From the NCBI GenBank assembly GCA_024704765.1, contig JAKMXF010000210.1, positions 310,001 through 374,000 of the forward strand: a DNA stretch of 64,000 bases, written 5' to 3'. The position numbers were made by a program, and so were the translations under genes. Within the stretch, counting starts at the first letter, position 1; each line of letters opens with the position of its first letter. Source of the stretch: Oopsacas minuta. Lineage: Eukaryota > Animalia > Porifera. The notes beneath the pieces are model-generated. The model was not told where the DNA came from and did not search any database. It worked only from the letters and a program-made list of their open reading frames with translations. Positions 49,337 through 57,981 of the stretch are shown in pieces.

Positions 49337-52300
49337 ATGAAGTATATTCTAGTGACAGGATGTATTATCAGTGGATTAGGGAAAGGGATAATCACTAGTT
49401 CTATCGGTACTATCTTAAAAGGGTGCGGTCTGTCTGTTACCGCAATAAAGATTGATCCATATCTTAACATTGATGCTGGTACCTTCTCTCCTTTCGAGCA
49501 CGGTGAAGTTTTTGTCCTTGACGACGGTGGTGAGGTGAGGAATGTTATTGACCATTATCTTAATTACGTATTATCTCTCATTACTATGCTAGACTGTACT
49601 TGTATCTTTATTTGGTAATTATTTCAATATTACAGTATTGCGTAGCATTACTATATTTTGGATTAAATTTCTTGGTGAATTTTACTTACGTGCCAAAAGA
49701 ACAGAGCTTATACCTACATTCTAAACATTGCTCTGTTCCTAGGTGGATTTAGATCTTGGAAATTACGAGCGTTTCTTAGACGTAACCCTGCATCATGACA
49801 ACAACATTACAACTGGTAAGATATACAAACAGGTGATAGAGCGAGAACGTAGGGGAGATTATCTCGGTAAGACAGTACAGGTTGTGCCACATATAACTGA
49901 TGCAATACAGGAATGGGTAGAGAGAGTGGCGGTTAAACCTGTGTCTGGAGAGAACATACCACAGGTTAGACCAAATAATATACGTATCATAGATACTAAT
50001 CCGGTACAATGGTATTTACAGTTATAAATTGTAGATATGCGTGATAGAGCTTGGAGGTACAATTGGAGACATAGAGGGAATGCCTTTCATTGAGGCGTTC
50101 AGATGTTTCCAGTTCCGAGTGAGTAGAGAAAACTTCATGACAATACTAGTTAGCTTGGTACCAGAACCTGGTTGTACTGGAGAACAGAAGACAAAGCCTA
50201 CACAGAACGCCGTAAGAGAGCTGAGAGGATTTGGACTCTCTCCTGACCTAATTGCATGTAGAAGTGCTCGAGCATTAACTTTGGAGTCCAGAGAGAAAGT
50301 TGCACATTTTTGTCACGTACTACCTGAACAGGTCAGTGCATATTGTATATGAATCTCACTAAGGTATTGAAACTTATGCCAAACTCAAATTGAAAATTTC
50401 GCAAATAATGAATTTGTAAATACAGTAAAATACTTTTTTTTAAATGCAAACTATAAAAATACAAAAATCCTGAATAATGATTATTCCTAACAATGTGGCT
50501 TGTCATGCTTGTCACCACACAATTTATAAAATCTCTTTCATCTCTCAGTAAGGAGCGAAGTTGTTATAATCAGCTTCTTGCGCGAATTTAGACTCATTAG
50601 GCACGTCTATATACAGATTTTCAGGTTCTGACTCAACACTGATAGAGGAGTGCATGTGTAGCGGCATTTCTGGAGGATTGTTCGTGGGAATTGCCGTAGG
50701 TAATGAGATATTAGAGGAGGGGTAGGAATTGTTTCCAGCGTGTATATAATCGCTACTCTCTCCAGAATCCGAAAGGTATTCTGACTTGAGATACCGGATA
50801 AAATCTTCTGGAGCTAAGCTGGACACGCTTGAAGTTCCACTTCCTGGATAATACATCTCCCAAGGACTATTCCCTAGATTCCCTGTAGATCTCCACTTGT
50901 ATATGTTAGCATCGAAATTGTTGAACGCTAGCAAATTCTGTGAATTGAGCTCATCCATGCTTTTGGAACGACTGACTGGTATATGCATGAATCCTTGGGG
51001 TAGTTCTAAATGTGATTCAGGATTCGCCAGAGTAGGATAGTACAGTTCAGCAATAGACGGATCACCACTCATATTTGAACTAATTGGACCATAGTTATTT
51101 CCCATACTTGGCTCGGAAATGTTTGATGAAAGGTTACTGTCTAGAATAGAGTTAGGATCAATGACCTCAGGAGCATGTGAAACAACAATCTCTAAAGAAG
51201 AATAGATTATATATTAAACGTGTATACATTCTATACTATAATTTTCTATGTTTATTATCTTACCAGGCATTTCTGGATATATTCCTTCTTGAGAGTGATT
51301 ATTAAGAGAATAGCTGTTGTAAGGAGATGGCCTGTCTACGAAATCTGAAAATGGGCTGTCAATAGCTGAAAAGTTTGACGGAGGTTGACTTTTGACATTT
51401 GTTATGTCAATATCTCTCAGTTGTATTTCCAATTCAGGTATGACTGGTTGAAACTTACTGGAATAATCGATACGAGGATTGAAAGGGTGTTGAGGCATAA
51501 TAGGCTGATGACCAAAGTTGATGCTAGCCAGTGACCCGTGCTTAGAAACCGGATGAGGTGCATCTTTCTTCTGTATTCTCTTTCTATTGTGTGGGTAAGG
51601 TAGGATCTGGTAGACTTTGAATGTATCTGTATGTTCCTCTTTACACTCTTTTATATCTTTCAGGGAATTTAGTGCGCAGCGAAAGTTTATCTTCCAGATA
51701 GTGGGATCTGAGTGTTTAGCATACTTACCAGTGTATAAGGCCCATTCTTTGAACAGAGCGGCGTCTCTCTCTCTATTGTAACCTTTCTTCTTAGCATGTC
51801 TCCAGGGCACTTTGAATTTACTCTGCTCTTTGTCCACCCAGTCTAGCCCTGGAAACCGTTTAGAGTTGACTTGCTCAATTATCCAGTTCTTCATTTTCCC
51901 TCCTTTGTAGTGTCGCTCCGCTCCTTTCGCGGATGTGTCGAAAACATCTCTCCCTCCAGGTATTGGCGAGCCAGATGAGAAAGTGTACCCTTGGGCCATT
52001 ACTCCGCTAAATTAATTACAATTATACATAATACATTAGTTTGCTAGTGTACTTTCAAAATGCTGATTGATTACAGCACATACACTACTTTCACAATGTT
52101 ATCATTGCAATATCCGATCTTCCGATCAGTTATACACGCATTTATGTTGTATATTTTAAGTTTCAATATGTTTCAATATTGTTTATTACTTGTATTACCT
52201 TCTGTTGGTTCTAGTTGTTATTTGGCTGTAAAATCTTTATATACTAGGACTATTAGCCTTTGCTCTCATATTACATCTCTTCTCTTGGCATATTCCTTGC

Positions 52301-57981: not shown

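Follow-up and report, generated by a model that had tools for sequence, protein, structure and literature searches.

A nest of three antisense transcription-factor genes within an intron of the CTP synthase gene of the glass sponge Oopsacas minuta

The CTP synthase gene and its large third intron

We analysed a 64,000-nt stretch of the Oopsacas minuta genome (the window; contig C210, positions 310001–374000) that contains a CTP synthase (CTPS) gene on the plus strand. As read from the sequence, the gene has seven exons encoding 625 aa, and every intron has GT-AG boundaries. Exon 1 (49337–49534, counted from the ATG; donor gag|gtgagg) corresponds to positions 1–66 of the Pfam family CTP_synth_N, exon 2 (49743–49964; acceptor ctag|gtg, donor cag|gttaga) to positions 65–130 of PF06418, and exon 3 (50035–50331), which ends with the residues VLPEQ, to CTP_synth_N positions 137–232. 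Exon 4 (56015–56320) encodes the end of the synthetase domain, as judged by alignment to the yeast enzyme, followed by a fast-evolving linker (omega 0.06–0.19 for the exon). The GATase domain begins in exon 5 (56380–56659; Pfam) and continues through exon 6 (56983–57260), which carries the catalytic Cys motif GVCLGMQ, and exon 7 (57685–57981), which carries the QYHPE motif and the stop codon (Pfam and motif reading in both cases). The class-I GATase domain of CTP synthases has a Cys-His-Glu triad. In the sponge protein, the N-terminal synthetase domain is contiguous with a class-I GATase domain, and the catalytic motifs are in place. PF06418 matched only one locus in the whole 61.5-Mb assembly (61,460,524 bases in 365 contigs, ~36% G+C); CTPS is therefore single-copy, and this locus must be the working CTPS gene.

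The third CTPS intron (50332–56014, plus strand, phase 0) is 5683 nt long, with a GT-AG pair of splice sites: the donor reads cag|gtcagt at 50331/50332 and the acceptor reads ttag|gtt at 56014/56015. An initial annotation of this DNA, made from the sequence alone, had placed a break in the CTPS coding sequence after VLPEQ (50331) and its resumption at 56015, and both the splice sites and a contiguous protein alignment bear this out. In searches of Pfam and the PDB, which for CTPS and IRF were run exon by exon, residues 144–238 of the yeast CTPS chain 7rmf aligned with exon 3 and residues 239–277 aligned with exon 4, indicating that the CTPS protein is contiguous across the large intron; residues 144–240 of human CTPS1 also aligned with exon 3. 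We infer from these sequences that the 50331/56015 junction is spliced in vivo. A protein word search with exon 4 returned a single match, a genomic exon ORF on another sponge contig, and no spliced product. The remaining CTPS introns are 208, 70, 59, 323 and 424 nt long, and the published O. minuta genome has a mean intron length of 341 bp and 1.59 introns per gene (PMC10280926). Hence, the earlier estimate that the third intron is about 100 times the typical length is correct only relative to the shortest CTPS introns; the excess ranges from 13- to 96-fold over the other introns of the gene, and is ~17-fold over the genome mean.

Three coding sequences and their conserved flanks (50545–55589) lie entirely within this intron (50332–56014). 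They encode an interferon regulatory factor (IRF) and two small bZIP proteins, and, as had been proposed, they are arranged in tandem antisense to CTPS, each gene being complete and on the minus strand. We found no tRNA, Rfam family, repeat, further gene or transposon remains in the rest of the intron and, in blastn comparisons with relatives, the intron was unconserved outside the coding parts and a few conserved blocks.

The nested IRF and bZIP genes

The IRF gene has two exons that join in frame to encode 460 aa on the minus strand. Exon 1 (51264–51999) encodes a DNA-binding domain with five Trp residues (Pfam IRF, 8.2e-32; omega 0.04–0.09). A 72-nt GT-AG intron in phase 1 (51192–51263) joins this ORF in frame to that of exon 2 (50545–51191, including the stop codon), which encodes a Ser-rich C-terminal half with no Pfam match (omega 0.03–0.09). 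Membership of the IRF family is indicated by the PF00605 score (110 bits, against a cut-off of 27) and by the five spaced Trp residues. Among PDB entries, the DNA-binding domain scored 2e-30 (109 bits) against IRF4 and almost as well against IRF2/IRF1 (~7e-29, 104 bits), with IRF3 at ~4e-14; the near-equality of the IRF4 and IRF2/IRF1 scores means that the DNA-binding domain does not resolve the subfamily. Searches for the IAD1 association domain (Pfam IRF-3, PF10401) gave no Pfam match at E-values up to 1 among five orthologues, and the architecture is that of an IAD1-less IRF. Thus, the description of this gene as IRF1/2-like holds for the absence of IAD1, a feature shared with IRF1/2, but not for the DNA-binding domain, which scores IRF4 as well or better.

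The C-terminal half of the IRF shows 80% mean column identity over five lineages and contains invariant Ser-rich motifs. Its AlphaFold2 model, built from a shallow alignment, has a pLDDT of 43 and no domain fold, and this half of the protein is probably disordered. We considered a hidden IAD domain in the C-terminus and rejected it, since it was seen by neither Pfam nor AlphaFold2. Upstream of the IRF coding sequence, a non-coding block on the minus strand (52000–52431) is 69–74% identical by blastn to the corresponding DNA of four loci from relatives (L001, L002, L003 and L007) and is continuous with the conserved coding part; it is likely to comprise the 5' UTR and promoter. The genome has one other IRF-domain locus, on contig C311, and no bZIP neighbour was seen within the ~5.5 kb inspected around it.

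Each of the two bZIP genes is a single exon on the minus strand: mini bZIP 1 (53154–53522) encodes 122 aa and mini bZIP 2 (54730–55131) encodes 133 aa. Both ORFs are intact, ATG-initiated and of similar length in every lineage (121–132 aa in all lineages for bZIP 1). The bZIP 2 gene is flanked by two blocks conserved in blastn comparisons, one downstream (54473–54729, minus strand), likely to be the 3' UTR, and one upstream (55132–55589, minus strand), likely to be the 5' UTR and promoter. The upstream block is 70–72% identical to L001, L002 and L007, and in part to L003, and no ORF on its minus strand reaches 40 aa.

Searched alone, bZIP 2 matched Pfam bZIP_2 (8.5e-4) and bZIP_Maf (6e-3), each below its cut-off (17.5 bits against a gathering score of 22 for bZIP_Maf); bZIP 1 alone had no Pfam match. 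By contrast with these single-sequence searches, a joint profile (A1) built from the orthologue sets of both bZIPs (the window, L001, L002, L003 and L005) matched the CNC-bZIP domain of Nrf2 (7x5e_B) with an E-value of 2.4e-7 over profile positions 36–122, and further matched BACH1 (6e-6), SKN-1 (3e-3) and NF-E2 p45 (0.03). The AlphaFold2 model of bZIP 2 has a pLDDT of 85 and a fold in which short helices precede a single long one, and its top Foldseek matches were all Maf/CNC chains, from Nrf2-MafG, MafG, MafA and MafB, with probabilities of 0.9–1.0 and weak E-values of 0.09–0.4. Together, the profile match and the Maf/CNC structural matches make "CNC-like", the label given in the initial annotation, a fair description of both proteins.

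The basic regions of both bZIPs depart from the canonical DNA-binding signature (Asn plus a Cys/Ser-Arg pair, N-x7-R), which neither protein carries. In all five aligned lineages the invariant Asn is replaced, by Ser in bZIP 2 and by Cys in bZIP 1; the Arg is retained, and His replaces the Cys of the Cys-Arg pair in all cases except the bZIP 1 of the window. The loss of the DNA-contacting Asn suggests that both proteins are probably dimerisation partners or modulators, or else bind DNA with altered specificity. Neither protein is a 1:1 orthologue of the stress regulators of the Nrf2/CNC type: their 122–133 aa hold only a bZIP module, with no Neh/Keap1-type region in either protein, and they belong to a multi-locus family. 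An exact protein look-up of bZIP 2 found no record.

Genome-wide, Pfam bZIP_Maf (PF03131) matched at least 77 places and profile A1 matched at least 35. The nested bZIP 1 and bZIP 2 are absent from the 77 PF03131 places and are divergent members of this family of at least 77 loci, most of which have no IRF nearby. We retrieved 62 distinct small ORFs of the mini-bZIP kind. The Asn is kept in 24 of the 62 and lost in the other 38, being replaced by Met in 18 of the latter, by Ser in eight, and by other residues in the remainder. Canonical Maf genes lie on contig C88. The large and apparently undescribed family of mini Maf/CNC-type bZIPs may be more interesting than the nest.

Conservation of the nest and selection on its genes

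Homologues of the IRF with 65–82% identity were found on long ENA contigs, and we compared the loci that surround them. Three of these loci (L001, L002 and L005) come from three assemblies, two (L003 and L004) are haplotigs of one assembly, and L006–L011 represent a further lineage. Two short contigs (L012 and L013) carry more distant IRFs and were uninformative on synteny. The same nest is present in five glass-sponge lineages other than O. minuta; synteny in related genomes had been suggested as a check on the arrangement. In the order common to these loci, a UQ_con-LRR gene is followed by the CTPS 3' exons, bZIP 2, bZIP 1, the IRF gene and the CTPS 5' exons, beyond which lie a small membrane-protein ORF, a SHIPPO-repeat gene and a giant gene; strands are kept as well as order. 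The host intron has GT..AG ends at the same codon in L001–L005, and ranges from 5057 to 6799 nt in the relatives. At the DNA level, L001, L002 and L007 are 86–92% identical to one another, whereas identity to the rest is ~75% for each of L003/L004, L005 and the window, which makes six species-level lineages on at least four deep branches.

For most pairs of sequences, Nei-Gojobori dS either exceeded 1 or could not be computed. Omega was 0.03–0.09 for the IRF gene, 0.06–0.26 for bZIP 2 and 0.23–0.40 for bZIP 1, with 0.01–0.05 for CTPS exon 3. The combination of saturated dS and low omega indicates that the three nested genes are real and constrained by purifying selection, and that the nest is old. 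The only conserved non-coding DNA is a stretch of ~430 nt upstream of the IRF gene, the 3' flank of that gene, and two stretches beside bZIP 2, of ~250 nt on its downstream side and ~460 nt on its upstream side. These blocks fit separate promoters and UTRs for the individual genes.

Explanations for the nest and comparison with known systems

We consider it likely that the locus as a whole represents nothing more unusual than an old nest of genes, such as is common in glass sponges. Under this explanation, CTPS would be transcribed from the plus strand, and removal of the third intron (5.7 kb) by splicing would yield an intact enzyme of 625 aa, while the intron would house three independent minus-strand transcription-factor genes, each probably with its own promoter. 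The bZIP pair would be an ancient tandem duplicate derived from the large, lineage-specific family of small Maf/CNC-like bZIPs. It is extremely unlikely that the arrangement is instead an artefact, whether through misassembly or because CTPS is split into two separately expressed halves. Long-read assemblies that are independent of one another show the same structure, on contigs of 0.09–1.4 Mb, and exon 4 lacks a start codon and is immediately preceded by an in-frame TAG, so that it cannot be read as a separate ORF. Together with the position of the break, inside the synthetase domain, this TAG makes two separate genes an unworkable reading.

The initial annotation had suggested that induction of the nested genes could interfere with CTPS transcription, coupling defence to nucleotide supply, and had allowed a neutral rearrangement as an alternative. 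Functional coupling of this kind, in which antisense induction of the IRF and bZIP genes lowers CTPS expression through transcriptional collision or antisense RNA and so links defence or stress to the supply of CTP, is very unlikely in our estimation. All three genes are antisense to CTPS, the nest is old, and the distance from the IRF stop codon to the exon 3 donor is only 213 nt (176–305 nt in relatives), such that the IRF 3' end may overlap CTPS exon 3 and leave room for antisense interference. However, collinearity extends equally to every neighbouring gene, so the nest is conserved to the level of background synteny and this conservation adds no signal, and ~12% of glass-sponge genes are nested (PMC10282587). 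The argument from viperin and its product ddhCTP has no basis in this assembly, since viperin was undetected: the best match, scored exon by exon, was a generic radical-SAM protein with 39 bits against a cut-off of 450 bits. Matches to the ISRE-like motif GAAANNGAAA were judged not enriched (seven in the window against 3.4 expected); the only one in the nest falls inside the coding sequence of bZIP 2, and the CTPS promoter and the vicinity of the CTPS start contain none. Moreover, the nested bZIPs are members of a family of at least 77 loci rather than orthologues of stress regulators. A fuller version, in which microbial or stress-induced transcription of the IRF and mini-bZIP genes throttles the sole CTPS gene, possibly reaching exon 3, as a link between defence and pyrimidine supply kept throughout the glass sponges, is more improbable still. 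Coupling, if real, would represent a rare use of gene nesting as a regulatory device, but nothing here favours it, and the neutral alternative fits better. Conservation of the nest cannot by itself exclude a function.

It is also unlikely, if less so, that the three nested genes form a module linked by co-regulation and joint protein action, with CTPS merely the container. Vertebrate IRFs and small bZIPs cooperate on composite elements, and PDB entry 1t2k, which has ATF-2, c-Jun and IRF-3 chains, is among the PDB matches of both the bZIPs and the IRF. The order and orientation of the IRF gene and both bZIP genes are unchanged across six lineages, and both bZIPs are small and have no activation region. 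Against such a module, linkage of the three genes is no tighter than that of unrelated neighbours, a motif shared by the three was not found, mini-bZIP genes occur at 77 or more places that are mostly IRF-free, and the IRF locus on C311 showed no bZIP within the ~5.5 kb inspected.

If the nest is an ordinary arrangement, as we favour, it would persist because gene order in glass sponges changes very little and escape from a host intron is difficult for a nested gene, and persistence of the nest need not reflect mutual regulation of CTPS and the three factors. For annotation, the locus matters in that gene callers that forbid nested genes would fragment CTPS or miss the three transcription-factor genes. 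The present analysis also supplies a curated model for one of only two IRF loci in the compact O. minuta genome.

The individual genes resemble known proteins in part. Like proteins of the IRF1/IRF2 type, the sponge IRF has its DNA-binding domain, with five Trp residues, at the N-terminus and lacks an IAD1 (IRF-3/SMAD-like) association domain; unlike theirs, its C-terminal half is lineage-specific, probably disordered and rich in Ser, and contains short motifs that are strongly conserved. The nested bZIPs share with the CNC-bZIPs (Nrf2, BACH1, SKN-1 and NF-E2 p45) and the small Maf proteins an extended helical region before the basic region and zipper, and at 122–133 aa they are similar in size to small Mafs. 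They differ from both groups in having Ser or Cys in place of the invariant Asn and His in place of Cys, and in single-sequence Pfam scores that fall below the gathering cut-offs. CHOP/DDIT3 and CREBZF/Zhangfei, which belong to different bZIP subfamilies, may offer a further parallel: they have a defective basic region, without the canonical DNA-contact residues, and keep the zipper, a combination that suggests partner-dependent or inhibitory action.

The closest parallel for the arrangement itself comes from another glass sponge, Aphrocallistes vastus. In the genome of that species, 2432 genes, or 12.4% of the total, are nested and many of these are conserved; its microsynteny with O. minuta is extensive (PMC10282587). 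Only 83 nested genes were annotated in O. minuta, a number attributed to the annotation method (PMC10282587). Neither the A. vastus nor the O. minuta paper describes the CTPS nest. The terms "IRF" and "CTP synthase" do not occur in the text of the A. vastus paper (PMC10282587); in the O. minuta paper, "IRF" is absent from the main text, and both terms are absent from the supplements (PMC10280926). Like the nested genes of A. vastus, many of which are single-exon, those described here are complete genes within a host intron, conserved among hexactinellids, in a collinear genome. The CTPS nest thus adds a new case to a pattern that is known and common among glass sponges.

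Miniature bZIP genes across the assembly

We searched the O. minuta assembly with the Pfam bZIP_Maf model (PF03131) and found that miniature Maf/CNC-type bZIP genes, the class to which the two bZIP genes within the CTP synthase (CTPS) intron belong, form a large family, with matches at 77 or more places, every one of them scoring above the cut-off. The matching loci are mostly open frames of 100–210 aa, and tandem or inverted pairs are frequent. Examples from the loci that we fetched (L014–L065) lie at C88:838965-846304, C55:198732-201966, C309:403023-406583, C22:302854-312867 and, on the contig that carries the window, C210:207453-209543. 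The invariant Asn of the basic region is kept in 24 of the 62 distinct fetched mini-bZIP ORFs; the position is otherwise occupied by Met (18/62), Ser (8/62) or other residues (12/62). Contig C88 also contains a cluster of four longer, canonical Maf-like genes (ORFs of 256–320 aa), in which the motif NRGYA is present, either exactly or closely matched. The expansion of the mini-bZIP family is not described in either glass-sponge genome paper (O. minuta, PMC10280926; A. vastus, PMC10282587).

IRF genes and viperin

Exon 2 of the IRF gene in the same intron (window 50545-51191, minus strand) encodes the C-terminal half of the protein, which is unfoldable yet strongly conserved. Its invariant motifs, including a stretch of 32 residues and SVESE..LYIDV, look like short linear motifs of the phosphorylation or degron type. 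The only other IRF-domain locus in the genome is on the minus strand at C311:404722-404949 (L066), where an intron interrupts the DNA-binding domain and Pro/Ser-rich ORFs lie downstream. The initial annotation had also invoked viperin (RSAD2), as the enzyme that converts the CTPS product. We detected no viperin gene in the whole assembly using the TIGR04278 model, the top match (C221:345851-346336) scoring 39 bits versus a cut-off of 450 bits.

CTPS and its neighbours

Exon 4 of CTPS includes a fast-evolving stretch of ~70 aa in the synthetase-GATase linker (window 56105-56320, plus strand), with 55–67% identity and an omega of 0.06–0.19 between lineages; the flanking catalytic exons are 90–98% identical. 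CTPS is followed directly downstream by a 1343-aa ORF that has no introns and matches UQ_con and LRR (58615-62646, plus strand); it is found at the same position in all related loci, with a length of 1339–1344 aa. Four abutting giant open frames of 4005, 3776, 3010 and 1957 aa (3192-41767, minus strand) have strong GC skew and look like one giant gene of ~12,700 codons, the end of which is found beside the nest in the related loci too.

A recurrent palindrome in the window

The palindrome TGACGTCA occurs at 11 sites in the 64-kb window, from 2907 to 61225 (0.55 expected), none of which is inside CTPS or the nested genes. TGACGTCA forms the core of the Maf recognition element of the CRE type, which raises the possibility of a connection between its abundance and the expanded bZIP family.
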